A stretch of 64,000 nucleotides of DNA, from the IMG/VR virus record IMGVR_UViG_3300028920_000001, positions 248,001-312,000 of that record. The stretch is one strand, 5' to 3'. Position numbers and translations under genes: made by a program. The notes under the pieces were generated by a model that saw only the letters and a list, made by a program, of their open reading frames with translations, was not told where the DNA came from and searched no databases. Shown piece after piece: positions 3 to 51,413 of this stretch; position 1 is the first letter of the stretch; the number at the start of each line of letters is the position of its first letter.

Positions 3-308
3 AGACTACGAAAAAGAATAGTTAAGAAAAATCGTAAATCTCGATTTGTACCTTCAGATGCTATTATTGTTCCCCCTGATCATGAAATTTCGCCCATTAT
101 GCCGTCTGCTTATTTAAAGAACCTCCGTATAGTTTTTCTTTCTACTAGTCATGGCATTGGGATGACTTGTATCCTTCCTGATGAGCTCACTTCGTTTACA
201 ACTCCGCCTAAATCTGTTCATTGTATTAATGTCCATACCTTAAGTTCTAAGCGACTAGCACGATTCATAACTTATGATTGGATGGTGGAAGATATTATGG
301 AATCCTAG
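3..308 (+). CDS. Hypothetical protein, 5'-partial, with C-terminal VEDIMES motif
   Basis: Frame is open from the window edge (RLRKRIVKKNRKSRFVPS...) into ORF 99..308. Confidence 0.6.
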   Translation, partial: RLRKRIVKKNRKSRFVPSDAIIVPPDHEISPIMPSAYLKNLRIVFLSTSHGIGMTCILPDELTSFTTPPKSVHCINVHTLSSKRLARFITYDWMVEDIMES

Positions 309-781
309 CTATTCATCAAATCTTGAACTAAAGATAAATCAACAGCTTCTCTAATCTTTTCTTCTGATATTCCTCGTTGTTTGGCTATAGTAACTATCTC
401 AATTATATCTTCAATCAATGCGCTTTCCGGAATAGGTTCTCTTATGGCTTTCTCAGGGGAGCTAAAATACTCAAGATCACCCTCATATTGTATTTCTTTG
501 GATGTCACTCTAAAATTACTTCGAATTTGTCGATTGGAATGGGTTAGATTTTCTAATATGTGTCCTATATAATGGTTCATTTTGTCTGATTTAATATGAT
601 CAAAATAGGCAATAGGTCGTTTTGTACGAATCGCTTCTCGAATAAATCCGATAGCCAATAAAAATGTTCGTCCTTGACCCCGGTTCTTACTATTTAAAAG
701 CCAGTTGATAGTTCGAAGGTGACTTAATTGATCATCGTTAAGTCGAGCTACTAGGTCATAATAATATTGCCAACCACTCAT
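305..781 (-). CDS. Hypothetical protein with degenerate P-loop-like motif; ends VQDLMNS
   Basis: RGQGRT motif; leaderless-type GTAAACT-N6-ATG upstream. Confidence 0.65.
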   Translation of the reverse strand: MSGWQYYYDLVARLNDDQLSHLRTINWLLNSKNRGQGRTFLLAIGFIREAIRTKRPIAYFDHIKSDKMNHYIGHILENLTHSNRQIRSNFRVTSKEIQYEGDLEYFSSPEKAIREPIPESALIEDIIEIVTIAKQRGISEEKIREAVDLSLVQDLMNS

Positions 782-810
782 GTTTAGAGTTTACATTGGT
801 ATCATAAAAT
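782..810. promoter_or_regulatory. Back-to-back leaderless -10 promoters
   Basis: 29-bp gap holds GTAAACT-N6-ATG (minus) and GTATCAT-N5-ATG (plus). Confidence 0.65.
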
Positions 811-1938
811 ATGGTAGATGCTAGTAAAATTGGTTGGGGTCATTATCGAGAGTACGAAGGACCTTTTTTCAAGGGAAATGCCCCTTTTAAGTTTCCTGAA
901 GACCCATCTGAAAATCATAAGAGATTAGCAGTTATTACTGCTACTGAAGGTGGACGTTATAACGCCTATAATGGATATGATCGGTGTATTTGTTCACTTG
1001 GTTTGATTCAGTGGTGTGAGGCTAAGTATTATCTAGTTTCAACTATGCTTGGATATGTAGCTGATTTACACCCGGAGGCTCTTCAGCCTCTTCACACTCA
1101 TTTAGCTAAAATTAGAGCTGAATTCAAAAAGAATCATCGTGATCGTTATCGTTTCTTTTTCAAGGATGAACGGGGTGAAGTTGATCAGGGTCAAGAACAA
1201 AAGCAACTTTTCTTGTTAAACTCGAGTGGACTTCGAAATTCCTGGGATGAAGAATCAAAGTATTATGCTAAGCAAATGGCTTCGGTTCTAGCTTCAGTAT
1301 TTGAAGATAATAATGCTCAAAATGCTCAAGCAGTCTACACTGCTAAAAAATTGATTGGATTTGCTACCAAGCAAGCTCAACAAATTTTATTTGGTCATGA
1401 GCCTTCTGGGAAGGCTGAAGATTGGGTAGGAGCCGCTCAAGCTGCATATTTATCATATGCGGCTAATCTACCTGCTGTGGCATCTAAGCATATTATAAAA
1501 TATCAAGAACAAGCTGGTGACTTCCAACCAAATCAAGAATGGGTGGTTGGAATGTTGAAGCAACTCACTTTCGGGCCTAGTATTTCCATTTATCCACATC
1601 GATACAACGCTATTCGTCCAGTTCTCGAGAAGCTCTACAAAATCGATTTACCTGATTTTGCTAAAGAACTGAAGGAACAAGAAGACTTTCATGCTTCAAA
1701 AGTCGATATTGATATTGATGATGATTTTGATAAGTTAAAAGAACCTAAAGCAGTTCAAGAAGCACTTATTAGTCTGGGTTTTGATTTGGGTCCGCATGGA
1801 GCTGATGGAGTAATTGGTCGCAAAACACTTGCAGCTCTTATGGCTTTCCAACAACATCGTGGACTTAAAGTTGATGGAGTTATAGGATCAGATACTCGAA
1901 AGAAATTATGGGAAGCAATAACTGGTCGGTATTGTTAG
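811..1938 (+). CDS. Endolysin / peptidoglycan hydrolase with C-terminal PG-binding domain
   Basis: C-terminal VQEAL..LGF..GADGVIGRKT..AL..FQ...GL.VDGVIG is PG_binding_1-like; N-terminal TEGG..YD..SLGLIQW is lysozyme-like. Confidence 0.8.
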   Translation: MVDASKIGWGHYREYEGPFFKGNAPFKFPEDPSENHKRLAVITATEGGRYNAYNGYDRCICSLGLIQWCEAKYYLVSTMLGYVADLHPEALQPLHTHLAKIRAEFKKNHRDRYRFFFKDERGEVDQGQEQKQLFLLNSSGLRNSWDEESKYYAKQMASVLASVFEDNNAQNAQAVYTAKKLIGFATKQAQQILFGHEPSGKAEDWVGAAQAAYLSYAANLPAVASKHIIKYQEQAGDFQPNQEWVVGMLKQLTFGPSISIYPHRYNAIRPVLEKLYKIDLPDFAKELKEQEDFHASKVDIDIDDDFDKLKEPKAVQEALISLGFDLGPHGADGVIGRKTLAALMAFQQHRGLKVDGVIGSDTRKKLWEAITGRYC

Positions 1939-1941
1939 ATT

Positions 1942-2130
1942 ATGGTATTTGATTATCCCGATAAACCATTGAAGGAATTAACTGATGTTGAACTTTTGAA
2001 TTTATTAGATAAAGTTTCGGGTGAAGTTAAGATTAGAAATAGTCTAAAGTTAGAAGCTATTGGAAGAAATCCTCAAGAGGCTATCAAAACTGCTATAAAT
2101 ACGTTCATGGAGAATATGGATAAAAAATAA
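1942..2130 (+). CDS. Small hypothetical protein
   Basis: 62-aa ORF preceded by GTATTGT-N6-ATG. Confidence 0.6.
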   Translation: MVFDYPDKPLKELTDVELLNLLDKVSGEVKIRNSLKLEAIGRNPQEAIKTAINTFMENMDKK

Positions 2131-2150
2131 AAACGAACTAATTATCCTGA

Positions 2151-2702: not shown

Positions 2703-2758
2703 AAAAGGTTAAGTGTTCTAAGTGGTTGCGTTCTATTCGTCTATTAAGTGTAGATCAC

Positions 2759-3641: not shown

Positions 3642-3792
3642 AATAAAGGACCGAAGGCGAAATCGAATAAAAGGATTTCAATATTTATTCTTTGTTCTGT
3701 TTCAGATTGTCGATTTAAGTCCTTTGAAATACGTTGATCTTCTTCTTTGCAGACTGTATAATATTCAGGTGGCATGCATTTATTAGATTCAT

Positions 3793-4331: not shown

Positions 4332-4348
4332 AACTAATATTACATTTG

Positions 4349-4452: not shown

Positions 4453-4953
4453 TCATGAATTCATAATTTTTCTTACCATCTTTAATTTGCTTTTTTCTAT
4501 TTTCTTAGCGTAGAAATGGTAATAATGAGGAAGATGAATTTCAAATTCTGACTGTTCATCTTTAATTGCGTTTTCAATTTCAAGAAAATGTAATATATTC
4601 TCTATAAACGAATTGCAAATAGTACCATTAATTTCGCCGTGATAAAGGGCTTCCAACATTTCTGCTATATAGAGTCCGACTGAACTCTCTATTTCAATTG
4701 AACGATTGTCTTGATCATTTGAAAAGATATAATTCGATAATTTGGTTTTGTTCCAATTTAGCTTCCAATTTACTCTATAATGTTGAATCGTGATTTTCCT
4801 ATTTGATAAAGTGTCTGTTTCCTCTATTTGAAAACAAATAGAGGTTATACTATTACCCCATGCTTTAATAGTTTTATATTTCAAATTGTTGGGTTTGACC
4901 ATTTTTGGTTCTGATCTCCCAACTAGATAATATGCTGATTGTTGTTCAAACAT
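4453..4953 (-). CDS. Hypothetical protein; ends VRKIMNS
   Basis: 166-aa ORF with the shared C-terminal motif. Confidence 0.6.
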   Translation of the reverse strand: MFEQQSAYYLVGRSEPKMVKPNNLKYKTIKAWGNSITSICFQIEETDTLSNRKITIQHYRVNWKLNWNKTKLSNYIFSNDQDNRSIEIESSVGLYIAEMLEALYHGEINGTICNSFIENILHFLEIENAIKDEQSEFEIHLPHYYHFYAKKIEKSKLKMVRKIMNS

Positions 4954-5128: not shown

Positions 5129-5161
5129 ATTGAAAATGGATTTTTAAAATCTTATATAAGT

Positions 5162-5404: not shown

Positions 5405-5746
5405 ATGAATAATTTAGATATGGTTTGTAGTAAATGCAAAATAGCAGAATGTTGTCCTAAGAAGGGGTCCAGTCCATTAGTTATACCTGGCAAAAAACCA
5501 GAAATGTGCCAGTTAGTTAACGGGTATGGGCGAGATCCGATTTCAGATGATAAATTATCTGAAGAATCTAAACAACTTGTAGATAAACAAGGAAGATGTC
5601 TATCTATTGCTGAAATTCCTGTTTTAGATGAACATACTGGAAAAATCTATCGCGAAATAGTCAAGATCTTTCATCAGCCTATTCTTCATCCACGTGAAAA
5701 AACTAATTGGCAATTAGATATGATATACCCAAGAAGTCATCGATGA
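5405..5746 (+). CDS. Cys-rich hypothetical protein
   Basis: CSKCKIAECC; GTAAAGT-N6-ATG upstream. Confidence 0.6.
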   Translation: MNNLDMVCSKCKIAECCPKKGSSPLVIPGKKPEMCQLVNGYGRDPISDDKLSEESKQLVDKQGRCLSIAEIPVLDEHTGKIYREIVKIFHQPILHPREKTNWQLDMIYPRSHR

Positions 5747-7089
5747 TCACCAATAGTATCAGGTTTCACTGCTCGACACCATTGCATTAATGATGGCCAC
5801 CGGTCTTTTGCTAGTTCATACATTTGATATGCAATTTTACGATATGAAATATGTCCCTGTGGTTGAGTTCGCAATTCTACAATATAATATAATTCCTTAA
5901 GATCCACTTGAAATTGAGATCTATGGAGATAACCCAATGGTATTATATATTGTATTAAATCTGTATCATAAATAACATTTTCATCTATATATTGGGCAGC
6001 TTGAATCATGATTTCATTATATTCATTATTTAATTCAGGATTTTCTGCAATATCCACTGGAGTGCAATATCCATAATTAGTAGATAATGGTTCAATATAT
6101 TGTTCACATCTTCGGTGTCTTTGTAAATCTCTGAATGCGCCATAATCCATCATGATTTCATAAGTGATTTTAATAGTTTTGAATATATCAGGAACTTCAA
6201 ACATGGATGGTCTTTGATTCATGCAATTTTTAAATTCTTCCCAACTCATATAATGCCAAGATGCAACCAAAGATTCAAATGCAGTTTGTTCTAAATCAGG
6301 ATCAGGTAATAAATATGGTCGCGAAATTTTTACATATGGAGATGGATGATCTGCAATGAATTCATCCCCTAATGATCCGAGATTTTTGATTGGAAACTGG
6401 AATTCATTTGGTTCAACATGTTTCATGAGTACAGGGACTACATTTTGTACTGCGGTCAATAATTTTTGTCCAATATGTTGGAATTCTGGATTAGTGTGAC
6501 TTAATAATTCAACAGTTAAATTTCGAATATCCCTGAGGTTTGCGACAGCTGCTAAATTAGTACCGGTTCCAGCAGGTAAAATATATCGAACATTATCAAA
6601 AGCTCGAGCTTTAACTATAGGGTCTTTTAATGTTGCAGGATCATCAGGGTCTTTCTCCATCTTTATAGCACATTCTCTTAATACTTTAGGATATAATCTA
6701 TCATAGGCATCATAAAATCTAGATACAAATTGGAGCATAGATGCAGATGCACCTGGTGGAGTAATGAATGATTCTTTGGAAAATTTTTGATATCTAGTAC
6801 TCTTTTCTGAATATCCGGGTCTTTGGAGTTTTTCAAGAATTTTAGATGCAATAATTGATACCCCTTCAAAGCAAATGGGTAAATTAGCTAATTCTGCTAC
6901 TGAGGAATGATTGTATTTAATTACCCACTTTTCATGAAATTTATCTGCCTCTTCCTTTGATAATTTAGCTAAAATCTCACGAGCTGAAAGAGGCGATCTC
7001 GAATACTTTGCTAGTACAGTTGCTTGTACGGCTGGATCAAGTAATCTACCATCTTGATCGGCCAAACAAAAGATATCAGCTGGAATCAT
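5737..7089 (-). CDS. thyX: Flavin-dependent thymidylate synthase, tandem-domain type
   Basis: HSSVAE, EKSTRY, ARAFDNVRYILP, RDLQRHR, ELRT..QGH motifs; start moved to ATG 7089, which has a GGAG SD. Confidence 0.85.
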   Translation of the reverse strand: MIPADIFCLADQDGRLLDPAVQATVLAKYSRSPLSAREILAKLSKEEADKFHEKWVIKYNHSSVAELANLPICFEGVSIIASKILEKLQRPGYSEKSTRYQKFSKESFITPPGASASMLQFVSRFYDAYDRLYPKVLRECAIKMEKDPDDPATLKDPIVKARAFDNVRYILPAGTGTNLAAVANLRDIRNLTVELLSHTNPEFQHIGQKLLTAVQNVVPVLMKHVEPNEFQFPIKNLGSLGDEFIADHPSPYVKISRPYLLPDPDLEQTAFESLVASWHYMSWEEFKNCMNQRPSMFEVPDIFKTIKITYEIMMDYGAFRDLQRHRRCEQYIEPLSTNYGYCTPVDIAENPELNNEYNEIMIQAAQYIDENVIYDTDLIQYIIPLGYLHRSQFQVDLKELYYIVELRTQPQGHISYRKIAYQMYELAKDRWPSLMQWCRAVKPDTIGDHR

Positions 7090-7099
7090 CGGAGCTCCT

Positions 7100-7738
7100 G
7101 TGGATATGGATGCACAATCCAAACTAAACTTACAGCAAAAAGTTTCTCAAATACAGCATTACTGGTTTGAATCACTGCATAAGCAATCTGCTAGAGTAAG
7201 CCAAGTACGAAGATATGATAAGGGCAAATCTAAGTATATCTTATTTAAAAAACCAATTAAGAAGAATATGCCTGAGGATTTCAGGCCATGGCAGAGTATG
7301 TTATCTCCATCTGCTTTATATAATTGTTCACTTAAATGCCGAAAGGCAATGGGAATCTCTACTCCTGAAGTAAAATGGGTTAGTATTAAAAGATGGGTTA
7401 CTACTACCCCGAGTGGAATTGACTTACCTGAAGGAGTATATTATTCAATCAAACGACACGAAGAATTTGATGCTTCAACAGATCCACCTAAATTCATCAA
7501 AACTCAATATATCTTATTAATGTTTCCTTATGGGAATGTATGGAGTCAAATTGAAAAAAATATACCTATTACTGAGGATTGGATGTTTACTGAACATGAG
7601 AATACGTTAATGCTTGAACATTTAATGCGTAAAGATGCTGCATATCCATTGGACGGATATTTTGGTCGTGTATATGAATATTTAATTAATAATGAAGATC
7701 AAATTGGAATCCATTTAAAGCGAAAGAAAAACAAATAA
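7100..7738 (+). CDS. Hypothetical protein (start uncertain)
   Basis: 212-aa ORF divergent from thyX. Confidence 0.5.
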   Translation: MDMDAQSKLNLQQKVSQIQHYWFESLHKQSARVSQVRRYDKGKSKYILFKKPIKKNMPEDFRPWQSMLSPSALYNCSLKCRKAMGISTPEVKWVSIKRWVTTTPSGIDLPEGVYYSIKRHEEFDASTDPPKFIKTQYILLMFPYGNVWSQIEKNIPITEDWMFTEHENTLMLEHLMRKDAAYPLDGYFGRVYEYLINNEDQIGIHLKRKKNK

Positions 7739-7987
7739 TTATCTAATTTGAATCCATGAGATAGTTTTAAGAATTCTAATTTGTTCTTCTAATTTAAGTC
7801 TAATGTCTTTATCATGACTCTTAGGTAATTTAATTTTTGCCTGTGGGGCTCCATTAGATTCTATTTCAAATTCAATATTTTCAATAAACCCTATTTGTTC
7901 GGTACCAACATAGACGGTGCACCCTCGAGTGCTTATACACACTGTGAGTACACCGTCTCCGAAAACTTTAGGATTATCGAAACTCAC
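7739..7987 (-). CDS. Small hypothetical protein coupled to the purZ-like gene
   Basis: 4-bp ATGA overlap with the stop of 7984..9204. Confidence 0.6.
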   Translation of the reverse strand: MSFDNPKVFGDGVLTVCISTRGCTVYVGTEQIGFIENIEFEIESNGAPQAKIKLPKSHDKDIRLKLEEQIRILKTISWIQIR

Positions 7988-9204
7988 AGCAGGCTGATAA
8001 TATCCTCATGGTCAGCACCGGTTCCGATCAAAACAACCGGTACTTGGGCAATCTCCTCGACTTTATCGATAAATTGACGAGTTTCTGAAGAAAGCTTTTC
8101 TAAAGCCTCTTTTCCGCCACGAATTCCATGGTCTTGCCAATTGAGATACTGAACAAAATTAACTGAAATTTTAGTGACTCCGTTGGTGCGGACCGCATCT
8201 TGTAAGCCAATCCAGGAAAAAGTAGCAACACGACGAATGCGTTTAGTTACTGTCGTTCGTTCACGCTCAGCCAAAATTTTCTTTTCTTCTTCTGGCATTC
8301 CGGCTTGATCAGCTACCTGTTCCCAGGTGAGTTCTTTGCAATCAGGATAAAAATCTCCGGAGTATCCTTTTTGCTTTCCTTCTTCAATCACGTTCCCGAC
8401 TCGGATCGGCACAGTACGGAGATTCATATAGACATCTCCAATCATAGAAGGTGGTATAGCCATATGATCCATAGCTGCCTGTAAGGTGCAATTTCGAGAA
8501 GTGCAATATGGATAATGAGAACCATGATCAATGCTGAGGGCATATCCTTGGCTTCCCTCATGTAGCCAGGTATGCCCTTCGTTTATAATATTGTGAGTTA
8601 AATTACGAAATTCGAAAGCATCTACAACCTTGACTTGTTCACAAAATTCATTAGGCATCCCATCAAGCCACATACTGGTTTCTTCATCAGTATTGATCAA
8701 ATGACGGACAGCATCTAGAACAGGATCACCACCATCACTACTGCTCCTGGCTAGAATAACATCTGGCTTTCGCATGATGCGGTCAGTGATAGCTGCTGCA
8801 GTACCTTGCATAGTCGAAGCCACATGCTTGGTGGAATTGGCGCCAGATTCTTCCCTTTTCTTATGTTCATCTGTAACGATGCTAGTGCGATCATGAATGA
8901 AAATCTTTGGCCTATTTGCTTGATCCCATTCTTTGATCAATTGTTTCCAAAAGAAACCAGAACCGGGCGAGACGAAACACTTAATATCGACGCCCTTAAC
9001 CTTCTTCAAAATAGCGGCAGTAGGCAAAGCCTTGGCTACAAATTTAGTTCCATCTTGGAAAGCAGCTGTATGTCCAGCATTAGGATAGTTTGAAGAAGAA
9101 ACATTTACAATTCCAAACTTATCAGCTAACCAAGCTGAAATTTTTCCTTTTCCACTAGATCCCCATGCCTGATCGATAAGACAATTAAACTTTCCTGTTT
9201 CCAT
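7984..9204 (-). CDS. purZ: Adenylosuccinate synthetase homologue, PurZ type
   Basis: WGSSGKG (Ser where PurA has catalytic Asp), PNAGHT, STMQG, EGSQG, YPYCTSR, PIRVGN, ELTWEQ, TTVTKRIRRV, NFVQYL. Family is clear; PurZ versus PurA is inferred from residues. Confidence 0.75.
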   Translation of the reverse strand: METGKFNCLIDQAWGSSGKGKISAWLADKFGIVNVSSSNYPNAGHTAAFQDGTKFVAKALPTAAILKKVKGVDIKCFVSPGSGFFWKQLIKEWDQANRPKIFIHDRTSIVTDEHKKREESGANSTKHVASTMQGTAAAITDRIMRKPDVILARSSSDGGDPVLDAVRHLINTDEETSMWLDGMPNEFCEQVKVVDAFEFRNLTHNIINEGHTWLHEGSQGYALSIDHGSHYPYCTSRNCTLQAAMDHMAIPPSMIGDVYMNLRTVPIRVGNVIEEGKQKGYSGDFYPDCKELTWEQVADQAGMPEEEKKILAERERTTVTKRIRRVATFSWIGLQDAVRTNGVTKISVNFVQYLNWQDHGIRGGKEALEKLSSETRQFIDKVEEIAQVPVVLIGTGADHEDIISLL

Positions 9205-14052: not shown

Positions 14053-14253
14053 ATGACTAAGAAGAAGGATCCGGGACCAATCGTTTTAGTTCCGTGTAAG
14101 CGTGGAAGAGATCAAAAGACTGCCGGGACCAGTTGTTCTAGTAAAAAAGCATATAAATTAAGTGAAGACGGGGCTAAGCTTGTGAGGTTTAAGTGCGTTG
14201 AATGTGGACACACTTGGACTATTCCGGTTGGTGGCCAATTCACTGCTGTTTGA
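14053..14253 (+). CDS. Zinc-ribbon protein
   Basis: C..C..FKCVECGHTW. Confidence 0.65.
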   Translation: MTKKKDPGPIVLVPCKRGRDQKTAGTSCSSKKAYKLSEDGAKLVRFKCVECGHTWTIPVGGQFTAV

Positions 14254-14440
14254 TATTAGACACCGTTGGCAGTTGAAGATCGAAAATTCTCCGGCTCACG
14301 GAGGGGATAACCTGTATCAATGTCAAAATTGTGAATATAATATTTTCGCCAAGTCTCCAATGGAAGCTCAATGGCTTTCGGATAAATATGGTCACCCTTA
14401 TTGTAATTATCGCATTATATACAATATAATGGAGTCGTAG
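14198..14440 (+). CDS. Small His/Cys protein ending IYNIMES (start uncertain)
   Basis: HRW..CQNC..C plus the shared C-terminal motif. Confidence 0.5.
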   Translation: MNVDTLGLFRLVANSLLFDIRHRWQLKIENSPAHGGDNLYQCQNCEYNIFAKSPMEAQWLSDKYGHPYCNYRIIYNIMES

Positions 14441-35180: not shown

Positions 35181-36827
35181 GTGGATATCTTACAAAATTT
35201 GTTGGATCGAGGTATTGAGTCTAGTAATCTTAATACTGAAAAGACTTTAAAACATTTAGTCAAATTCGGACTAAACTCTAAGTCCGAAGTATATGCTGTT
35301 TGTAAATGTGGTAACGAAAGATTAATTAAATTAGCTTCTATTTTGAGAGTTATTAAACGAACTGGTTCATATCAATGTAATTCATGTGCTGTCAAAAATA
35401 AATGGGATGACCCATCTTATGCTCAGAGGCATAAGGACGGTGTTTCCAATTCATGGACAAAATCTAAAAGACAGAAACAATCTGTTATTTCCAGAGATTT
35501 ATGGTCCGATAGTAAATTTCGGGAGAAACAGCGGACTCTATCTATTGAATTATGGGACGATAAAGATAAAAGAGAAGAAGCTTCGAAATTTGCTAAGAAT
35601 TTATGGAGGAATTTAGAATATAGAAAACGTCATGAAGAAGTATGGGCTGATTCTAAATATAAAGCTGATAATTCTGAAAGAATAAAGAAAGTCTGGCAAA
35701 GGTCTGATTACAAAGAAAAATTTGAAAAACTGTGGGCTGATTCAGATTTCAAAAAGAAATTGTCTAAATGTGCTAAGCTTCTTTGGGAAAGTGAGGAGTA
35801 TAGACAGAAAGTAGTTATTGCACAGCGTAGACTTTGGGAGAATCAAAAATATAGAGAAAGGATGGCTAATATTAGAGCATCTCATTCTGGGAAAGATTCG
35901 ATTCTAGAACGAGTTACTCAGCAATTACTTAATCTTTTGAATGTGGAATATAATAAACATTATGTGATTGGTCCTTATGAATTTGATCTATTTGTTCAGT
36001 CTTATGATTTGCTGATTGAGTGTCAAGGAGAGTATTGGCATTCTCTAGATAAAGCAAAGAAAAATGATGCTGTAAAATCTACATATATAGATGAATATTT
36101 TCCTCAATTACAATTACTTTATCTATATGAAAGGGATTTTCTTAATCCTGAGATTGTTAAACAAAAGTTAGCTAAGGCTATTTATGGAGAAAATACTGAG
36201 GTTACTGAAATTGATTTCTTATTTTCCGATATTCAGATTCAAAAATTAGATATGAAGAAAAAGTTAAAGGATTCTTTTTATTCAGAGCCTGAAGAATTTC
36301 TTCAATCATTTCATTATGCGGGCTTTGGAAGATCAGCTAAAGTAATTTACGGGGCTTATTTAGGTGATAAGTTAACTGCGATTTGCAAGTTTGCAGGAGT
36401 GGTAAGAAAAGAAGTAGCTACGTCTATGAAATTAAAGCCATCAGAGGTCTTAGAATTAGATAGGTTTTGCATTCATCCCGAATATCAAAAGAAGAATTTC
36501 GCCTCTTGGTTTATTTCTCGTTGTTCTAAATTAGTATTTGAGGAATTTTCGAAGTTAAAGTATTTAGTTTCTTTTGCTGATACTACCTACGAACATTTTG
36601 GAACGATTTATAAAGCTGCTAATTGGCAAGAATTCCATAGAACTAGACCTAGTTATCATTATATGTCTGATGATGGTTTCATCATGCATAAGAAGACATT
36701 ATATGGACATGCTCGTTCAATGAAAAAGACTGAAAGAGAATACGCCAAAGAATTTGGATATACCAGGATCTATGGGAAGGAAAAAATTAAATTTATTTAT
36801 CCTAAGCTAATTTCAGCTTCTTGTTAA
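35181..36827 (+). CDS. Vsr/DUF559-like endonuclease fused to a Mom-like GNAT domain
   Basis: Trp-periodic helical repeats; YEFDLF..LIECQGEYWH; LELDRFC, LVSFADT, GTIYKAANW. Confidence 0.75.
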   Translation: MDILQNLLDRGIESSNLNTEKTLKHLVKFGLNSKSEVYAVCKCGNERLIKLASILRVIKRTGSYQCNSCAVKNKWDDPSYAQRHKDGVSNSWTKSKRQKQSVISRDLWSDSKFREKQRTLSIELWDDKDKREEASKFAKNLWRNLEYRKRHEEVWADSKYKADNSERIKKVWQRSDYKEKFEKLWADSDFKKKLSKCAKLLWESEEYRQKVVIAQRRLWENQKYRERMANIRASHSGKDSILERVTQQLLNLLNVEYNKHYVIGPYEFDLFVQSYDLLIECQGEYWHSLDKAKKNDAVKSTYIDEYFPQLQLLYLYERDFLNPEIVKQKLAKAIYGENTEVTEIDFLFSDIQIQKLDMKKKLKDSFYSEPEEFLQSFHYAGFGRSAKVIYGAYLGDKLTAICKFAGVVRKEVATSMKLKPSEVLELDRFCIHPEYQKKNFASWFISRCSKLVFEEFSKLKYLVSFADTTYEHFGTIYKAANWQEFHRTRPSYHYMSDDGFIMHKKTLYGHARSMKKTEREYAKEFGYTRIYGKEKIKFIYPKLISASC

Positions 36828-37787: not shown

Positions 37788-38060
37788 ATGAGTAAATTTA
37801 ATATCGAGGATCTTCGGTTTTCTTCCAGTTCAATTGATGATTTTTTCAAGAGTCCTGAACCCAGGGTTCATACTTCTTCGACGGTTGGGAAGGTCCGGGT
37901 TTCAGGACTTCATGAATTAGCCGGATTTAGTTTTATAGCTGAAGATAAACTGGTTAGGACTAGTAAACAAGACTTTTGGCAATTAGGTCAAGATGATGAT
38001 GGGTATTTCATCGAACGTTTGGTCAGTGACGATGATGGGCCGATCAAGGAAGAAGAATAA
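37788..38060 (+). CDS. Head-cluster hypothetical protein
   Basis: GGAGG SD; 90 aa. Confidence 0.7.
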   Translation: MSKFNIEDLRFSSSSIDDFFKSPEPRVHTSSTVGKVRVSGLHELAGFSFIAEDKLVRTSKQDFWQLGQDDDGYFIERLVSDDDGPIKEEE

Positions 38061-39184
38061 TGGACCTAGATAAGATTGCCCGTCGGATTAGTTCTTCTGG
38101 TCGCATTCGTACGGCTGGACGAATTGAATTCGTCCGTGATCAAGGTCCTCTTCGTCGTGATTTGCGTGCCAAGGGGTTTTCATTTAGCTCCGATACCTTA
38201 AAGGATTTAGCTAAAGTATTATGGGCTGCTGAACGAGCTCATAGTTATGGAATGGCTGCTCTAAGATTATTTTCTAAGACCCCTGCCTCTGAGATCAGTC
38301 CTGATGGATTATTGGGTGGCCGTGGGTATATTCAGCAAATTAAAGAGATGCGTTCTAATCTTTCTCAAGCTGTTGAAGTTCTATCTGCATTTTCAGATAC
38401 TATGCATGATGAAGTAAATGCAGATCATTGGGCTGGTGCTAGTGAATCAGAACCTGAAATTGAAGAGATTGTAGAACAAGCTGATGCTGTGAAAGCTGCC
38501 CCCGAGCAGTACGTTGAGGAGCAATTTGAACAGCAAGTTCCGGAAGCATCTGAAGATTTTAATCAGTTAACAAATCCTTCTCCGGAAGAAATGAATCCGG
38601 TAGTAGAAAATTCTGGCCCTCCGGATTGGGATTGGGGTCAAGAAGAGACTCAGATTCAGTCTTCGGAGAAAGCAATCCACCGCCCAAAAGATCCAAAGGA
38701 CTCTGATTTAAGAGTCCTGAAGGGCCAAATATCGAGCTCATCAATTCCAGTAGAGACTTTGCCTGGTCCCAGAGTGAAGCATATTGGGCCGGGTGAGGGT
38801 GATCAGGAATTCGGATATTATGCCGATGATGATGAGCGGCCAAGTGATGATCCTATCGGAGAAGGATTTCGTTTTCTAGAAGAAGTATATCAGGATTGGG
38901 ACATTGGAAAGGGTGGGGTGACTGGTTATGATAATCCCACCGATGGTGATACATCAAAATTTAAGCAATCTGCTCTTAAATTGGCAAATTATTCATGGCT
39001 TCCTGGTTCTCGAAATGAAAAATTAATGCCATACTATGATCCTAATGCTACTGATGAAGATGTTGAATGGATGAGAGCTCATGATCAGCCTGAGCCTCCG
39101 AAAAGCTTAGCGCCTCCTCCTGAAAATATGTTGCCTGATAAATTATGGGAGGCTCGACGTAATGCCGACATCTCTTCCGACTGA
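38060..39184 (+). CDS. Acidic putative internal head protein with MDLDKIARRISS leader
   Basis: Shared N-terminal motif; TAATG coupling. Confidence 0.65.
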   Translation: MDLDKIARRISSSGRIRTAGRIEFVRDQGPLRRDLRAKGFSFSSDTLKDLAKVLWAAERAHSYGMAALRLFSKTPASEISPDGLLGGRGYIQQIKEMRSNLSQAVEVLSAFSDTMHDEVNADHWAGASESEPEIEEIVEQADAVKAAPEQYVEEQFEQQVPEASEDFNQLTNPSPEEMNPVVENSGPPDWDWGQEETQIQSSEKAIHRPKDPKDSDLRVLKGQISSSSIPVETLPGPRVKHIGPGEGDQEFGYYADDDERPSDDPIGEGFRFLEEVYQDWDIGKGGVTGYDNPTDGDTSKFKQSALKLANYSWLPGSRNEKLMPYYDPNATDEDVEWMRAHDQPEPPKSLAPPPENMLPDKLWEARRNADISSD

Positions 39185-42247: not shown

Positions 42248-42853
42248 ATGGATGATGGCCCTACCGATGATCAGGATAAGGGTAACGGCGACGGCAAAGG
42301 GAAATTAATAACTTTCCCTGGTGGTAAGAAAGTTGACCCTGAAGAAGTTGGCCTGGATAGTATAGTAGGCCAAACTGGGGATATTCCTACTCCAGATATT
42401 TTAGATCCAGTGTACTTAGATAAAGAATTGCGGGAGCGAGTTGAATATGTAAAGAAACAGGCTCTAGTTCAGGCTATCACTGAAAAAAAGAGTACTATTG
42501 ACACTATCGATGCTGTTTTGGTTGAAATAGCGGAAGAATTAGCTCATCTTAAATTTGAAAGAAGAAAAGCTGCTAAAGAAGGTAAAAATACTGCGAGCTA
42601 TACCATTGGTAGAATAGGTTCTCTGACTAAATTAGCTGATTTATTATTGAAGAAGAAAGAATCTATGATGCAAGAGGAACTGGACCTGAAATCGTCCAGA
42701 TTCCAGGCAGTTTTTAGAGTTTGGATGGAATTTTTCCATGATTCGATGGAAAAATCTGGTATTTCTCCAGAAGTAATTGATGTTATATTTCAACAGATGA
42801 AAGCTGATATGGTTGATTGGGAAAGAAAAATGTCTACTGCCGGTATTGAATAA
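42248..42853 (+). CDS. Candidate terminase small subunit
   Basis: Helical 201-aa protein coupled (TAATG) to terL; positional inference only. Confidence 0.4.
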   Translation: MDDGPTDDQDKGNGDGKGKLITFPGGKKVDPEEVGLDSIVGQTGDIPTPDILDPVYLDKELRERVEYVKKQALVQAITEKKSTIDTIDAVLVEIAEELAHLKFERRKAAKEGKNTASYTIGRIGSLTKLADLLLKKKESMMQEELDLKSSRFQAVFRVWMEFFHDSMEKSGISPEVIDVIFQQMKADMVDWERKMSTAGIE

Positions 42854-44799
42854 TGCCTAGTATTGAGAAACAAGAAAAAAGTAAATTAACTGGACTTGTT
42901 GACGATTTTCTAATTAAAAGAAAGAAAATTAGTTCTGGAAATGATAGTGATGATAGTACTACATTTCTTACTATTATTGATTTTATCGAACGATTTAAAT
43001 TACTTCCATATGGTTTATTTCCAGTTCAAAAGTTCATATTGAAATTATATTATAATATTCCATTAGATGATAAGTTACCTGGAGACGAGCGGGATAGAAT
43101 CTATGTAACTCCGAATTTTAGATCCAATAAACGGGTCTATATGACGGAAGTTAAATACCTCGAATATTTATATAGTCAAGGTCGCTGCAATATAAAAGAG
43201 CAGGGTGATATTCGATATGAATTAATTTTAGTATTGGGACGACGAAGTGGGAAAAGTGCACTAGCTTCTTTAATCGCAGCTTATGAACTTTATAAATTAT
43301 TAGCTCGTGATTGTCCTCAGAAATTCTATGGGATGCCAGTTTCCAGTGAAATTCGAGTATTAGATGTTGCAAATGACAAAGACCAAGCTGAGATTGTTTA
43401 CCAAGATATTGCTGGATACGTAGAAAGTGTTGATTATTTTAGAACGTCGTTGGCTAATCATACGACACAATTTATGAAATTCAAAACTCCCCATGATAAA
43501 AGAAAATTTGGTGACGAAGGGCGCTCAACATTAACAGCTACATTCAAGAGCTCAATTGCTAAAGGTCTTCGTGGTCGTGGTGTTATTTGTTTTATTCTGG
43601 ATGAATTTGCATTCTTCTTAAATGAAAGCGGTAAGTCTAATGCGCGTGAAGTTTACCGAGCTATTACTCCATCGCTTAAGCAATTTACTCCAAAAGATTC
43701 TAAAGACAAACGAAAAGCTATCGCAAAATCTGAAGGTAGAACTGTTGTTATTTCTTCCCCTGATGCAAAAGATGGATTCTTTTATCATCTTTACCAACTT
43801 TCTTTGACTAAGGATGTTGCTGCGTCGAATATGCTAATGATTCAGGCTCCGACGTGGGAAGTTAATCCTACATTGAGCCAGCAAGATTATGAAATTGAAT
43901 ATGCTAAAGATCCTCGGGCATTTATTACCGAGTATGGAGCTCAATTTTCTGATCGAGTTCGTGGTTGGATAGAAGATGCGAAGGACTTACAAGATTGCAT
44001 TATTGATGATTTAAAGCCATTGGTACGTGGTAATCCTCGAGAGCCCTTCTGGGCCGGGTTGGACTTCGGAATTTCGAAGGATGGTACTGCTGTTGCTCTA
44101 ACTCATTTGTTGAATGGAAGGATTACTCTTGGTTATCATGAAGCTTGGTATGCTGGAAAAAACTGGAAAGAGACTAATCCTCATCTTACTAATCCCTTAG
44201 TTCCGTATGCGCGAACTCTTCAAGACGTTAAACGACTCGATATTGATGAGATAGCTAACTGGTTATTTGTCTTATCTAAACGATTTTATATTTTGAAAGG
44301 AGTATTTGACCAATGGGCCGGTCCAGTATTTGAACAAAAATTACATAAAACTGGACTTCAGCAATTTGAAATGCGTCATTTCAGTACTGCCGATAGTTCT
44401 AAAGTATACCAAAACGCCAAGATGTTCATGTACACCACTCAGTTGGCATTTTATGATTATCCGATTCCTAAGCAAGTTATTCAGGAAGATGGCCTAGTTC
44501 TACACTCTCCTTTAATTGCTGAAATGTTAGAACTTCAAGCTACTTCAGCGGGGAAAAATTTAATCTCTGTAGAGGCTCCAAACATTCCAGGAAAGCATGA
44601 TGATAATTCCGATGCTGTGATGAGAAGTATTTATCTAGCTGCTGAGTATATTTCTGAAAATCCTGGAATTTTGGATATTAGTCATATTGAAGTAATGCCG
44701 ATGGCTCGCAAAAATTATGGTTATCGGCATTTCCATCGGGCTCGAACCAGGCTCCATGGCCCTCCTCCGCCTGAAAGGCGTGTCTTTAGGCGGGGATAA
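42853..44799 (+). CDS. terL: Terminase large subunit
   Basis: Walker A GRRSGKS, Walker B FILDEFAFF, ISSP, nuclease GLDFG..D, FDQW, HDDNSDA. Confidence 0.92.
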   Translation: MPSIEKQEKSKLTGLVDDFLIKRKKISSGNDSDDSTTFLTIIDFIERFKLLPYGLFPVQKFILKLYYNIPLDDKLPGDERDRIYVTPNFRSNKRVYMTEVKYLEYLYSQGRCNIKEQGDIRYELILVLGRRSGKSALASLIAAYELYKLLARDCPQKFYGMPVSSEIRVLDVANDKDQAEIVYQDIAGYVESVDYFRTSLANHTTQFMKFKTPHDKRKFGDEGRSTLTATFKSSIAKGLRGRGVICFILDEFAFFLNESGKSNAREVYRAITPSLKQFTPKDSKDKRKAIAKSEGRTVVISSPDAKDGFFYHLYQLSLTKDVAASNMLMIQAPTWEVNPTLSQQDYEIEYAKDPRAFITEYGAQFSDRVRGWIEDAKDLQDCIIDDLKPLVRGNPREPFWAGLDFGISKDGTAVALTHLLNGRITLGYHEAWYAGKNWKETNPHLTNPLVPYARTLQDVKRLDIDEIANWLFVLSKRFYILKGVFDQWAGPVFEQKLHKTGLQQFEMRHFSTADSSKVYQNAKMFMYTTQLAFYDYPIPKQVIQEDGLVLHSPLIAEMLELQATSAGKNLISVEAPNIPGKHDDNSDAVMRSIYLAAEYISENPGILDISHIEVMPMARKNYGYRHFHRARTRLHGPPPPERRVFRRG

Positions 44800-45495: not shown

Positions 45496-47319
45496 ATGGC
45501 AGCTAAGAAGAACGGGAATGGACGAGTTAGAACCGGTCAAATTCCGGTTCAGCACGTTAATATCCAGAAGGTTCCTTCCAAAAAGCTAACTAAATTAGAA
45601 AGGCAAGCCCGGAGAGAAGCTGCTCAATCTATTCGTGTGGCTGCTACCTGTGGTCCAATTGGTGGATCTGGATTAGGAAGCGGGGGTTTTGGTGGTTATG
45701 GGAATGCCGATATTGGATTAGCTAATTCCAATTTTTACAGTCCTCAGTTATCAACTGACTTTTTAGAGTTACCTCAATCTGAGCGTGAAAAACGCGAGTT
45801 ATTTAGATTTTGGTATACAACTCATCCAATCGTTGGGGCATCAATTGATTTTCATACTGATGTCCCGATGTCAAAAATTCGGTTGTCTCTGCCGAAGGGG
45901 AAAGATCACAAAAGAAATAAGCAGATCTTGCATTACTATCAAGAAATGTGCAGGCGACTGCGGCTTTTCCAAGTTCTCTACGATGCCACTCATGAATATT
46001 GGTTACATGGAAATGTGTTTATTTTCTGTGAAGACCAAGATATGGCACCAGAACTTCCTGATTCTATCTTCGTGAAAGAAGTGGAAGAAGAAATTGGTGA
46101 AGTTGATGCATTAGGAAACCCGACGGTTCGTAAAGAAAAGAAACAAGTAGAGAAATCTGAAAAAGAAAGAATGGATGCCATTCACGAATATGTGGCTGAT
46201 AAATATCAGGGATGGCAGCGTCTTCAAATTTTGCCGCCAGAGCAAGTTAAACTAGAAGTTTTTCAGTATACTAATAAAGTTAATATGGAACTTATCCCGA
46301 GCGAAAAAGATCGTTTGGTGGTATTGAGAGCTGAAGATCAAGGGGATCCGGAAGCTAGAAGAATTGCTGATGATATTCCAGAACAAATTAAAGAGAATTT
46401 ACTTAACGGTCAGCCTATTCCATTAAATACTAGTCCTTACGAAGATTATATTTGTTCTTCGTTTTGTTATCATTTATCGCACAAAAAATCATCTTATGAT
46501 GATCGTGGAATTTCAATTTTAGAGCGTTGTCTTCGTACTCTTCTCTATCAAGATAAACTTCGTCAAGCCCAGACTTCGATTGCCTCCCGTGCAATGACAC
46601 CAAAGCGCATTGTGTGGGCAGACAAAATGTCTCAAACAGATGTGGAAGATCTGCGAGATCAGGTTGATCAAGCTCTGATTGATCCGGATTTCACTATTAT
46701 TACTAATTTTGAGCTTCATTGGGATGAGATTGGAGCTCGAGATCGTCTTTTAGATTTAGGTACTGAATACGAGATTACAAATAAATTATTGTTTATCGGC
46801 CTTCGAATTACTGAGGCTATGTTAACAGGAGAAAGTACCTATTCCGGGGAGCGTATTCATCTGGACGTGATGAATACAATGTATTTGCTTTACCGTGAGA
46901 CAATAGCGGAATTCGTTGAGGAGCAGATTTTTGCACCGGTAGCCGAAAAGAAAGGTTTTTGGGAAATTGATGAATATGGGAATCGGGTTCTTCTTTATCC
47001 GAAGCTTCAGTTTACCCGACTGGCTCTTCGAGATAATGCTGAACTTCAGGATTTCATGTTTAATTTATATCAAAAAGGCTCATTGCCTATTTCATATATT
47101 TATGAACTTTTGAACATTGATGTTGATGACGCCCATTCGGAACTTCAGAAGGATGTATTTACTCTGAAGGATTCTCAGATGAATGAATTGGTCAGGAACC
47201 TTCTAGGTGCGGCCGGGGAAAAGCTTTTGGATGAGACCGATGTGATTGATAAGATAGTAAAAAGTCTTGGTCTTAAACATGAAAAGAAAGAAGGAGATCG
47301 TTTTGGTAAGGAAGAATAA
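45496..47319 (+). CDS. Portal protein
   Basis: Position after terL; HPIVGASIDFH, EYWLHGNVF, RGISILERC, LTGESTYS; 607 aa. Confidence 0.8.
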   Translation: MAAKKNGNGRVRTGQIPVQHVNIQKVPSKKLTKLERQARREAAQSIRVAATCGPIGGSGLGSGGFGGYGNADIGLANSNFYSPQLSTDFLELPQSEREKRELFRFWYTTHPIVGASIDFHTDVPMSKIRLSLPKGKDHKRNKQILHYYQEMCRRLRLFQVLYDATHEYWLHGNVFIFCEDQDMAPELPDSIFVKEVEEEIGEVDALGNPTVRKEKKQVEKSEKERMDAIHEYVADKYQGWQRLQILPPEQVKLEVFQYTNKVNMELIPSEKDRLVVLRAEDQGDPEARRIADDIPEQIKENLLNGQPIPLNTSPYEDYICSSFCYHLSHKKSSYDDRGISILERCLRTLLYQDKLRQAQTSIASRAMTPKRIVWADKMSQTDVEDLRDQVDQALIDPDFTIITNFELHWDEIGARDRLLDLGTEYEITNKLLFIGLRITEAMLTGESTYSGERIHLDVMNTMYLLYRETIAEFVEEQIFAPVAEKKGFWEIDEYGNRVLLYPKLQFTRLALRDNAELQDFMFNLYQKGSLPISYIYELLNIDVDDAHSELQKDVFTLKDSQMNELVRNLLGAAGEKLLDETDVIDKIVKSLGLKHEKKEGDRFGKEE

Positions 47320-47347
47320 TAAACCTTAATTTAAATATCTAAATCGA

Positions 47348-49582: not shown

Positions 49583-49624
49583 TACGATTTCTATATCGTT
49601 GATCTAGTCAGGAGACTCCACACC

Positions 49625-50110
49625 ATGAAGAAGCAAGTTGCCAATTTAGTTCTTTCCAAGCTTGACAGTACTGCCAGCACAATTGAGACCCTTGCCAAAG
49701 AGGGTAAAATTGAGCGACAGGCGGCGAGTCAGCTAATTAAGAATCTGGACTCGTTTGCTGATAAGTTTGAAGTAGCAGCATTCGGAGAAAAGAATCTTAA
49801 GGCCCGTCAAGCTAAGGTTATTCAGCAGGATAATGATGAGCCGTATATGAAGACCTTTGACAATGTCAATGAGGTTCATCAGTCTGATGCTGACGAGCCT
49901 TATATGCATAAGTCTCCTCCGTCGTTCAATTCCAAGGGAATTGATAACTACGACCAGGATGCTAGCTCGACGGTTTCTACTCGTGATGAATATCAGGTTC
50001 GCGATTTGAGCGAGCATGCTGACGGCACCAAGCCGCAGCCGTCCTGGCCGAATGGCTCGGCCGGTAAGAGCACTCGTCAGGGTACTGCAAAGCCGAAGTC
50101 TTGGGCCTAA
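49625..50110 (+). CDS. Putative head protein
   Basis: AGGAG SD; duplicated DEPYM; GC-richer codons. Confidence 0.7.
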   Translation: MKKQVANLVLSKLDSTASTIETLAKEGKIERQAASQLIKNLDSFADKFEVAAFGEKNLKARQAKVIQQDNDEPYMKTFDNVNEVHQSDADEPYMHKSPPSFNSKGIDNYDQDASSTVSTRDEYQVRDLSEHADGTKPQPSWPNGSAGKSTRQGTAKPKSWA

Positions 50111-50148
50111 TCTTCAACTAGGCTTTTAACCCTAGATTGGAGTAAGGC

Positions 50149-50901
50149 ATGCGGAGCAGAGTTGCGTTTGTAGACGATCAAGTTATGGCGAAGGACTATG
50201 CCACGGGTGACATCGTGCGCAAAGTCAATTTCCGTGACTATTTTCAAACTCCGTATGCCGGTCGTGTCATTTATTCTAACCCGAAGACTGGAAAAGTCCA
50301 GGTTCAATGGCCTTGGGGAGCTGAACAGGAGTCTCCAACCGAATTGATTCGGGAAATCAATCCGAAGTTTGTTCCTCCGATCGCCTTGAATCAATGGTAT
50401 TCTACTTGGGAGGGTTCTCGTCTAATCAATGACAAGGACCTTCTCAAGGAAGAAGATAAATGGCGTAAGTCCCTTACTGCTTCTACCGTTCAAATTATTA
50501 CCAAGCATGAACAAAATACCATGCCGGTGTGGCGGCATGCTTGTAAGGCTTGGCATAATGGTTTAGATGAGGTTGAAGCTTTCCGGATTCTTTCTTTCCA
50601 ATTTGGAGAGGAATTCGGTGACGAAACAATCAGATTAACTATTTCTAATCTCTATAATCTCGGACGTCGAACTAAACTAGCGATTTATTGGAAAGATAAT
50701 ACTCGTCGATATAAAGTTACGAAGAAAGAAAAAGAAACTGGGAAATTAAAGTGTCCGCGTTGCAGTGGAACTCGGATGAAGCCGCGAGTTTATCGACAAG
50801 GCAAAAAATTGATTCAGTGTCGTGATTGTGGTTTTTCAATTTCTCCGAAAGATTTGATTTGGCCCTCTGAGACAATTACTGATATTGAAGATGATGAATA
50901 A
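50149..50901 (+). CDS. Head-cluster protein with C-terminal zinc ribbon
   Basis: CPRC...CRDCG. Confidence 0.7.
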   Translation: MRSRVAFVDDQVMAKDYATGDIVRKVNFRDYFQTPYAGRVIYSNPKTGKVQVQWPWGAEQESPTELIREINPKFVPPIALNQWYSTWEGSRLINDKDLLKEEDKWRKSLTASTVQIITKHEQNTMPVWRHACKAWHNGLDEVEAFRILSFQFGEEFGDETIRLTISNLYNLGRRTKLAIYWKDNTRRYKVTKKEKETGKLKCPRCSGTRMKPRVYRQGKKLIQCRDCGFSISPKDLIWPSETITDIEDDE

Positions 50902-50903
50902 AT

Positions 50904-51413
50904 TTAAGATTCCATAATCATTTGGACATCCATCAGTTCCTGAGCTGCACAAATCACTCCATCCCATTCCCATTGATTATGCCAATGGGTAGTGATTTTT
51001 CTTGAGATCGGCCTATTTTCTATAGGTCCTTTATCAATATTATGCTGTCCAAACTGTCGACAGGCAAATTGAGTAGCCGCAGCTATAATTATACGAGTTC
51101 TGAACATTTCGAATGACCAGTGTTGGTTATAATTTTTGAGATTAAAATACATAGTATTTTTATCTTCGGATTTGAGATCCATACTGAAGACTAATACTAT
51201 TTGATTATAATAACCCATCCGATCTAAGGTCTCAAACTGTTTTTCTTCAAATTTATGAACTTTTAACTGAATGTTTTCTAAATTTGGAACTGGTTGAATT
51301 TGTCCTTTGCTATCTTGGATTTCAATATATTTCTTCACTTTCTTTTTAGACCGTTCCCATCTTCCTCCGATGGTACTTCGGCGGTCTGGATGAGCTCCTC
51401 GGATTCGAGGCAT
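50904..51413 (-). CDS. Hypothetical protein ending VQMIMES, antisense within the head operon
   Basis: GTAATAT-N5-ATG upstream; shared C-terminal motif. Confidence 0.65.
   Translation of the reverse strand: MPRIRGAHPDRRSTIGGRWERSKKKVKKYIEIQDSKGQIQPVPNLENIQLKVHKFEEKQFETLDRMGYYNQIVLVFSMDLKSEDKNTMYFNLKNYNQHWSFEMFRTRIIIAAATQFACRQFGQHNIDKGPIENRPISRKITTHWHNQWEWDGVICAAQELMDVQMIMES

Follow-up and report, generated by a model that had tools for sequence, protein, structure and literature searches.

The 64,000 nucleotides analysed here (the window) are bases 248,001-312,000 of the 426,960-bp phage contig IMGVR_UViG_3300028920_000001 of IMG/VR, and the question that they raise is why proteins that do not otherwise resemble each other should end in nearly the same seven residues. 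An earlier note had pointed to five dissimilar open reading frames (ORFs) on both strands with endings of the form [VI]-x-x-[IL]-M-[EN]-S, and had proposed that this ending, hereafter the tail, is a signal that works at a free C-terminus. Translation confirmed the five tails, each at the end at which it had been placed (ORFs A to E in Table 1); pairwise BLAST of the five proteins found no similarity beyond the tail, and none of the five had a match in Pfam or PHROGs. The scale implied by those five cases proved to be a great underestimate, since the tail is present on about a quarter of the ORFs sampled and in a whole clade of huge phages.

Two samples of the contig were used. Stitching the flanks to the window gave a 92.9-kb stretch with 141 ORFs, which was not selected by the motif and is thus unbiased. 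The wider sample adds the pieces L015, L020 and L034 and amounts to ca. 113 kb, about a quarter of the genome, with 183 ORFs. Coordinates are relative to the window, so that negative values and values above 64,000 lie in the left and the right flank, respectively.

A seven-residue ending in a fixed register

When the window was translated in six frames, [VI]xx[IL]M[EN]S was found five times, all five immediately 5' of a stop codon. In 300 block shuffles it averaged 0.38 occurrences at any position and 0.023 in front of a stop, where no shuffle had more than one, so that the terminal frequency is above chance. In the 92.9-kb stretch, Met is found exactly at position -3 (counted from the C-terminus) in 30 of the 141 ORFs, the background frequency of Met being 2.6%, and 23 of these 30 end in [ILVM]-M-x-[ST]. 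The tail is especially dense between -18769 and -9082, where 17 of ca. 31 genes in 10 kb carry it, on both strands. The pieces L015, L020 and L034 together rendered 20 more tagged ORFs, for a total of 50 out of 183, a proportion that is biased upward because those pieces were fetched using the motif itself. A scan of 2.9 million IMG/VR contigs with a DNA pattern for the tail in one of its codon versions (GTN6-ATT ATG GAR TCN TAR) gave eight matches in this contig, one in a fragment of the same phage, and a single match in each of ca. 50 other contigs.

The core of the tail can be written [VI]-x-x-[IV]-M-[E/D/Q]-S-COOH. Over the 50 tails, information content is highest at five positions: -7 (V 31, I 10), -4 (I 32, V 13), -3 (M by definition), -2 (E 22, D 7, Q 6) and -1 (S 33, T 4, so that 37 of the 50 end in Ser or Thr). 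Asp and Glu are weakly enriched at -10 and -11, and an [S/T]-x-x-E cap is often found further upstream. The register is strict, since 49 ORFs have the Met of an [ILV]M pair at -3, against three with it at -4 and none at -2. Moreover, a relaxed form of the motif is terminal in 34 of the 183 ORFs, and its four internal occurrences in 33,871 positions are what composition predicts (4.8). Both the fixed register and the comparison of terminal with internal counts bear out the proposal of a protein-level signal that depends on a free C-terminus. Two weaker variants that had been listed beside the five, VVTLMEAA and LSMIQEA (ORFs F and G), have their Met at -4 and -5, respectively; they miss the register and were therefore not counted as members. 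The second of these had been placed at 57481, which is not an end of the actual ORF (57466..57630, plus strand, ending at 57630).

The five Ser codons in the window are all different (TCC, AGC, TCA, TCG and TCT), the Ile and Leu codons differ too, and the stops of ORFs A to E are TAG, TAG, TGA, TAG and TAA. The wider tagged set uses six Ser codons, both AGY and TCN, three Ile codons and all three stops. Because of this variation, the conserved object is the peptide and not the DNA, and the use of TAA, TAG and TGA alike behind the tail would be a sign that this phage reads each of the three as a stop. No conserved sequence was seen 3' of the stop of tagged ORFs, and the tail is kept in genomes with G+C contents of 37%, 43.5%, 52% and 55%. 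A DNA repeat or a terminator was ruled out by the synonymous variation at every position, together with the lack of anything conserved after the stop. It could still be argued that the ending is not a protein signal at all, and that it reflects an element of the DNA or RNA where genes end, be it a terminator, an opposite-strand promoter, a recombination handle or an overlap of start and stop, or else an effect of the nascent peptide on termination. Indeed, in the stitched region TCA-TGA stands at the end of 10 of the 30 tails and so creates an ATGA stop-start overlap with the next gene, and three convergent tagged pairs abut or overlap at their stops (305-308, where ORFs A and B share the four bases CTAG; -17131/-17129; -15731/-15730). 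However, the synonymous variation extends to AGY versus TCN Ser codons, all three stops are used with or without a downstream gene, nothing is conserved beyond them, and the tail survives the shift in G+C content from 37% to 55%. Synonymous variation and survival across that range, above all, make any reading at the level of DNA, RNA or the nascent chain extremely improbable.

Carriers, conservation and predicted structure of the tail

The tail is restricted to small proteins: in the 92.9-kb stretch it was found on 30 of the 90 ORFs of up to 200 amino acids (aa) and on none of the 51 longer ones. None of the ca. 45 ORFs with a Pfam domain is tagged, and the tail is absent from the replication and metabolic enzymes seen (ligase, RecD2, clamp loader, ribonucleotide reductase (RNR) and others). 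Conversely, 55 tagged proteins from this phage and its relatives gave no significant Pfam match, and 30 of them compared with PHROGs gave none either. The carriers are thus small accessory ORFans, in agreement with the earlier description of them as accessory proteins. When the last 14 residues were removed from the 50 carriers, an all-against-all BLAST rendered only two weak pairs, and a tail-less hidden Markov model (HMM) of the one family described below found only its own family, so that descent from a single paralogous family was ruled out for most carriers. The claim that they are unrelated therefore stands for most of them and fails for ca. 11 of the 50, which share a small alpha/beta domain, as defined by a profile built in this analysis, and whose fold has the tail as its final helix.

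This family is DUF2849-like. A structural comparison matched one of its carriers to a DUF2849 cluster of the ESM Atlas (TM-scores 0.70/0.77), and the same core is also present as tail-less repeats within large proteins, one of which matched PF11011 (DUF2849) with an E value of 0.0024, below the cut-off; the small carriers had no Pfam match. A fold search of the PDB with one good model found nothing (best E 3.9). Other carriers have zinc-ribbon-like, all-helical or membrane-spanning architectures. Three tagged proteins contain hydrophobic segments, and in our reading their tail would face the cytoplasm, as judged from Lys and Arg counts under the positive-inside rule. Among the five ORFs of the window, ORF D, weakly similar to two other tagged zinc-ribbon-like ORFs (E 0.002-0.008), is the least certain as a gene. 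For ORF B, tblastn found no match in GenBank phages, and in IMG/VR it matched only its own contig; a search of 5.8 billion proteins with ORF E found no homologue beyond the 90% cluster to which it belongs, and ORF E is identical in the strain variant L019.

Homologues of the carriers were found in an exhaustive profile search of 1.84 billion representatives with the DUF2849-like family. The small homologues from other metagenomes are less than 50% identical to each other, and nine out of nine new sequences end in [VI]xx[IV]M[E/D/S/Q/K]S. In an alignment of 12 homologues that includes these nine (21-38% identity), only four columns are invariant, which hold the initiator Met, one Trp and one Ala of the core, and the Met of the tail, and the Ser of the tail is at least 90% conserved. 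The contigs of the distant homologues, with G+C contents of 43.5%, 52% and 55%, bear arrays of small genes with the same endings. The earlier note had held that homologues without the tail would speak against a signal; the homologues keep it.

The range of the tail was traced through the terminase, which has more than 1,000 relatives, many of them on contigs of 240-445 kb. In the 78 loci examined around the terminases of relatives, the tail is present near the gene when the terminases are 55-63% identical, and was not found near it at 41-45% identity. In six relatives, a conserved tagged gene family lies within the head module, ca. 8 kb from the terminase; its member in the present phage is L034:509-1078, and ORF E, considered as an orthologue, was rejected. 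In LR745208.1 (485 kb, 44% terminase identity), none of the 407 ORFs in the first 250 kb has the tail, and no other C-terminal enrichment was seen. The survey of terminase relatives and LR745208.1 together indicate that the tag system is old in one sub-clade of huge, uncultured phages and absent outside it. As judged by sequence comparison, the tail is maintained by purifying selection across a clade of huge phages.

Individual genes point in the same direction. In the DUF2849-like gene L020:6806-7231, a decayed internal copy of the tail (VITFSEAKFRYRL) is followed by a hydrophobic segment and then by a new terminal KIMDS, and two other members of the family have insertions before the tail and yet end in EVMTS and EIMES. 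The strain variant L069 is 97.5% identical to L015 in the flanks and reshuffled in the middle, where genes have diverged, been replaced or been added: an orthologue at ca. 70% nucleotide identity keeps EIME[S to V], an extra gene that is missing from the reference ends in AAQIMLS, and a non-homologous replacement gene ends in VKRIMES. Islands of accessory genes are mosaic between these two strains, and the exchanged genes are still tailed. There are also members of the arrays that lack the tail. L020:8061-8258 (minus strand) is a natural truncation that stops just before the motif (...VISLEEA), and L148:186-380 (plus strand) is likewise tail-less, ending in ...LTVVSIK; both may be decaying genes.

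Two AlphaFold predictions, one confident and one poor, place the tail at the end of an alpha-helix that reaches the penultimate residue. In the confident model, a DUF2849-like carrier predicted with an alignment (pLDDT, the model's per-residue confidence score, 86.8), the tail helix follows a strand and has pLDDT values of 80-95; in the single-sequence model of ORF B (pLDDT 43), the tail helix spans residues 149-156. By geometric reasoning, positions -8, -7, -4 and -3 would lie on one face of the helix. It could be, then, that the tail acts in cis as a structural cap, a terminal amphipathic helix that packs on the core of its own protein and stabilises small, fast-evolving or newborn proteins. 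The consensus would then represent either a helix that caps especially well or a common origin in one ancestral strand-helix unit. The confident placement of the helix inside the DUF2849-like fold, the frequent upstream [S/T]-x-x-E N-cap and the existence of fold-level look-alikes in other phages, which align through residue 66 of 69, are all consistent with such a role. On the other hand, packing would accept Leu, Ile or Phe at -3, whereas Met occupies that position in the 50 tagged ORFs, with only two Leu variants noticed by eye in the ORF listings, and is invariant in the 12 homologues of the family. A cap does not explain the exact register with the carboxyl end or the Ser or Thr that is last in 37 of 50, nor why the motif is not used internally (the four internal matches equal the expectation from composition), why it is re-created at the new end after C-terminal extensions, or why clearly different architectures carry it. 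We regard this explanation as unlikely.

How the tail might be read

The tail is not the only terminal motif of this phage. An N-terminal leader, M[D/N][F/L]xxIAxRIA, is found on 13 of the 183 ORFs, and none of the 13 bears the C-terminal tail, in line with the earlier observation that no tagged ORF has the leader. The leader is kept in orthologues of the gene at 38060 within the near clade (L086, L088 and L104) and was not found in the far clade or in LR745208, so that it has the same clade limits as the tail. A promoter-like motif, TGTAnnAT, lies 5-6 nt 5' of the ATG in ca. 11 genes and looks, from its position, like an extended -10 element placed for leaderless transcripts. ORF E is preceded by TGTAATAT, 5 nt and the ATG, and ORF B by TGTAAACT, 6 nt and the ATG. 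The arrangements at these two genes thus fit the leaderless promoters that had been assigned to two of the five ORFs, and they are not specific to the tag, since untagged genes have the same; the motif of ORF E is that of an untagged gene for a protein resembling a deoxynucleoside monophosphate (dNMP) kinase.

On balance we lean towards the view that the tail is a short signal which, at a free C-terminus, is recognised in trans by a single reader in the cytoplasm. One pocket of this reader would accommodate the carboxylate of the terminal Ser together with the side chains of the invariant Met (-3) and of positions -4 and -7. The reader would be a protein peculiar to the phage clade and not a universal host hub; the restriction of the tail to one clade makes a phage-encoded reader the more likely of the two. 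Each genome probably encodes more than 100 clients, and if so many compete for one site, a machine that binds them transiently is likelier than a static scaffold.

The earlier note had offered a docking motif for a hub protein, a degron and a localisation tag as alternatives. The outcome that we favour, although tentatively, is control of turnover for the whole class. The reader would hand each client to a protease or unfoldase, the tail would be a putative C-degron that clears fast-evolving accessory proteins as a class, and untagged enzymes and structural proteins would persist. This is preferred because the tag marks accessory ORFans, spares enzymes and virion proteins, would face the cytoplasm and is also found on membrane proteins. 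In logic the tail comes closest to the sorting signals discussed below and to the ssrA-type degrons of ClpX, ClpA and FtsH (...LAA-COOH). In these degrons the last three residues and the alpha-carboxylate are recognised; they mark a class of proteins for one machine in the cytoplasm and can act on membrane proteins. They differ from the tail in that the ssrA tag is added by transfer-messenger RNA (tmRNA), non-polar and disordered, whereas the present tail is encoded in the genome, ends in a polar Ser and is helical. The non-polar end of ClpX substrates (LAA/VAA-COOH) was not found: the last residue is Ser or Thr in 37 of the 50 tails, and the residue at -2 is in most cases Glu, Asp or Gln, so that only the dependence on a free end is common to both. 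A tag derived from tmRNA was rejected, no tmRNA having been found in the sampled DNA.

Several observations weigh against the trans-reading of the tail, and against degradation in particular. A Pfam scan of the 117 untagged ORFs in the sampled 113 kb, about a quarter of the genome, found no TPR, PDZ or AAA+ protease candidate for the reader. Known bacterial C-degrons are unstructured and have non-polar last residues. In the confident model the tail is integral to the fold and not a floppy appendage, which fits a cis-structural role at least in the DUF2849-like family. Finally, the evidence on the host is conflicting, since two co-binned contigs of metagenome-assembled genomes, both mis-binned, disagree, one pointing to Lentisphaeria and the other to Methylobacter.

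A trans-acting signal could also serve recruitment or localisation, with the reader's pocket on a scaffold or at a site made by the phage (a factory, a condensate or a membrane patch) that concentrates accessory proteins; tail and leader would then make up a sorting code with two addresses. That the two terminal motifs exclude each other within the proteome and are limited to the same sub-clade would suit such a code, as would the strict C-terminal register, which is known from sorting signals such as peroxisomal targeting signal 1 (PTS1, ...SKL-COOH) and KDEL. Like these, the tail is short, has a fixed register with the carboxylate, is carried by many unrelated proteins and is essentially confined to the terminus, PTS1 and KDEL being non-functional internally. 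In their case one TPR or other carboxylate-binding receptor serves all clients, as the single reader inferred here would. However, they are eukaryotic and target organelles, and the present tail is that of a bacterial virus, with Ser as the last residue, Met at -3 and a helical motif that reaches back to -7. The h-h-x-x-h-h pattern of hydrophobic residues resembles that of the encapsulation peptides of microcompartments. Against recruitment, it would be awkward for more than 100 clients to share one static site, the 113 kb rendered no recognisable gene for a scaffold, shell or compartment, and some carriers have membrane segments; we consider it possible, and somewhat more doubtful than degradation.

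Loading into the virion is a less probable alternative. The tail would bind the interior of the prohead or a core protein, and a variable set of small effectors would be packaged and injected with the DNA. Virions of jumbo phages are known to hold many proteins, a limit of 200 aa would suit passage through portal and tail, hypervariable ORFans that differ between strains, as the carriers do, are what one would expect of effectors, and in six relatives a conserved tagged family lies within the head module, ca. 8 kb from the terminase. Yet the tagged genes are scattered among genes of nucleotide metabolism. ORF E is transcribed opposite to the head operon, and TGTAnnAT is common to tagged genes and to the dNMP-kinase-like gene, two observations that speak against late expression linked to the virion. 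Besides, the leader, found on an array that adjoins the head genes, is a more obvious candidate for capsid targeting, and the tail is contiguous with the fold, with no flexible linker. Three carriers with hydrophobic segments also count against loading, although weakly, since ejection proteins can have them. It is mainly the promoter-like motif, the orientation of ORF E and the more natural capsid signal offered by the leader that make virion loading rather unlikely.

Known cargo signals of HK97-fold shells compare in a similar way. Encapsulin cargo peptides, the C-terminal segment of the HK97 protease and the C-terminal helices of scaffolding proteins likewise dock diverse cargo through a C-terminus, and a phage setting would be plausible for such docking; the first two are LxIGSLK-like, follow a flexible linker and belong to cargo encoded beside the shell gene. 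Here, the consensus differs, the helix comes directly after a strand and is contiguous with the fold, and the tagged genes are scattered across 100 kb or more. Like the tail, the T4 capsid-targeting sequence is a phage-encoded address on unrelated small proteins, and I-M-E|S superficially resembles its L/I-x-E site (the bar marking the point of cleavage). That sequence, however, is N-terminal and cleaved, so that its closer analogue here is the leader. A prohead-protease site of the form I-x-E|S was ruled out, since many tails have Q, N, K, R or D at -2, which would not suit a glutamyl protease.

The tail could, lastly, be the substrate motif of an enzyme that modifies the terminal Ser or Thr or the carboxylate (by phosphorylation, nucleotidylation or ligation). 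Ser or Thr is last in 37 of the 50 tails, and the tagged region contains an ORF similar to dual-specificity phosphatases (ca. -4830 to -4405), with a NADAR-domain ORF at the edge. Since the other 13 tails end in residues that could not be so modified and still keep the Met, and no kinase or ligase was recognised in the sampled DNA, we think this very improbable.

Other C-terminal signals offer fainter parallels. The clamp-binding tails of the partners of T4/RB69 gp45, the bacterial clamp-binding motif QL[SD]LF and the tail of single-stranded DNA-binding protein (SSB) are also peptides at the extreme C-terminus that bring several proteins to one hub, and the phage does encode clamp-loader subunits. 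Those motifs, however, are rich in aromatic residues and serve a handful of replication or transcription clients, whereas the present tail is found on a quarter of the sampled genes, and comparison with QL[SD]LF, QxxLxxFF and LDFLF showed no core aromatics, the replication proteins being untagged. PDZ ligands and the substrates of tail-specific proteases have a hydrophobic last residue, which is Ser in 33 and Thr in four of the 50 tails. The signal of the Dot/Icm (type IVB) system of Legionella has a hydrophobic residue near -3 and acidic residues ca. 10-17 from the end, and is borne by hundreds of unrelated, rapidly evolving effectors of small or medium size. Met at -3 and the enrichment of Asp and Glu at -10 and -11 recall it, a likeness to be taken as a lead. 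The Dot/Icm signal, however, is loose and statistical, the present motif is sharp, and no secretion system or coupling protein is evident.

Genomic setting and implications

Table 1. Position of the tagged ORFs, of the two rejected variants, of head genes, leader-bearing ORFs and promoter-like sites, in window coordinates
Feature	Coordinates	Strand	Product	Ending and stop	Remarks
ORF A	3..308	+	C-terminal 101 codons of a 124-aa ORF	MVEDIMES, TAG (306-308)	No Pfam/PHROG match
ORF B	305..781	-	158 aa	LVQDLMNS, TAG (305-307)	
ORF C	4453..4953	-	166 aa	MVRKIMNS, TGA	
ORF D	14198..14440	+	80 aa, TTG start	IIYNIMES, TAG	CxxC...C zinc-ribbon-like pattern
ORF E	50904..51413	-	169 aa	DVQMIMES, TAA	Within the head-gene module, on the opposite strand
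ORF F	62317..62877	-	186 aa	VVTLMEAA	Met at -4, not counted
ORF G	57466..57630	+	54 aa	LSMIQEA	Met at -5, not counted
Terminase	42853-44799				
Portal	45496-47319				
Head gene bearing an intein	51465-54224		919 aa		LAGLIDADG intein
Leader ORF, window	38060-39184				
Leader ORFs, window	58299-60591				Six tandem ORFs
Leader ORF, window	63828-64214				
Leader ORFs, right flank	69243-69689, 72364-72609				L002
Leader ORFs, left flank	-8765, -7817				L001/L006
TGTAnnAT sites, window	51413 (E), 4331, 781 (B)				
TGTAnnAT sites, left flank	-91, -2277, -18472, others				

ORF A had been described as 3..308; its tail stands as read, and its extent does not, as the ORF starts 66 nt before the window.

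Pfam scans of the contig recognised metabolic and replication genes, namely those for PurZ-like, ThyX-like, class II RNR, NAD-ligase, RecD2, clamp-loader and Mom-like proteins. The PurZ-like adenylosuccinate-synthetase homologue, the ThyX-like gene and the Mom-like domain protein are located at 5737-9204 and 35181-36827, and their presence suggests that the DNA of this phage is modified, possibly with 2-aminoadenine. A free-standing gene for a LAGLIDADG homing endonuclease (19249-20049) lies between the RNR and ligase genes. A segment of exactly 1,150 bp (52019-53168) is missing from the strain variant L019 (IMGVR_UViG_3300030616_000491), which is otherwise 99.4-99.6% identical; the intein of the 919-aa head-module ORF is thus polymorphic, and inteins are also found in several of the terminase relatives. 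An EF-Tu homologue (399 aa), RtcB and tRNAs for Arg, His, Pro and Met are encoded on L015 and L020, adjoining tagged small genes. At ca. 57.4 kb (L002 4429-4578) there is only a 49-aa ORF here; in the 428,825-bp version of this phage in ENA, its place is taken by genes for an HNH endonuclease, a methyltransferase-like protein and a protein of 151 aa.

Short C-terminal signals for address or degradation, such as PTS1, KDEL, ssrA and encapsulin cargo peptides, are well known in cells. The earlier note knew of no described tag with this consensus, and we found none in the literature searched, nor, to our knowledge, any report there of a phage that labels a quarter of its genes with one such tag. 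A proteome-wide C-terminal tag in a bacterial virus, paired with a mutually exclusive N-terminal motif, is in this respect new and notable. We also put forward, with reserve, the possibility that leader and tail are two mutually exclusive terminal addresses, each with its own phage-encoded receptor, which would direct more than a third of the phage's proteins to different destinations or fates within the infected bacterium, and that new small genes would plug into the system by acquiring a seven-residue ending.

If the reader exists, the ending would be of use in annotation, as a flag for real genes among very short ORFs, and a portable tag of seven residues and its dedicated receptor could be employed for targeting or for conditional stability. 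Moreover, the reader would offer one handle on the hundreds of small, strain-variable ORFans of huge phages, whose destination or control it may govern.

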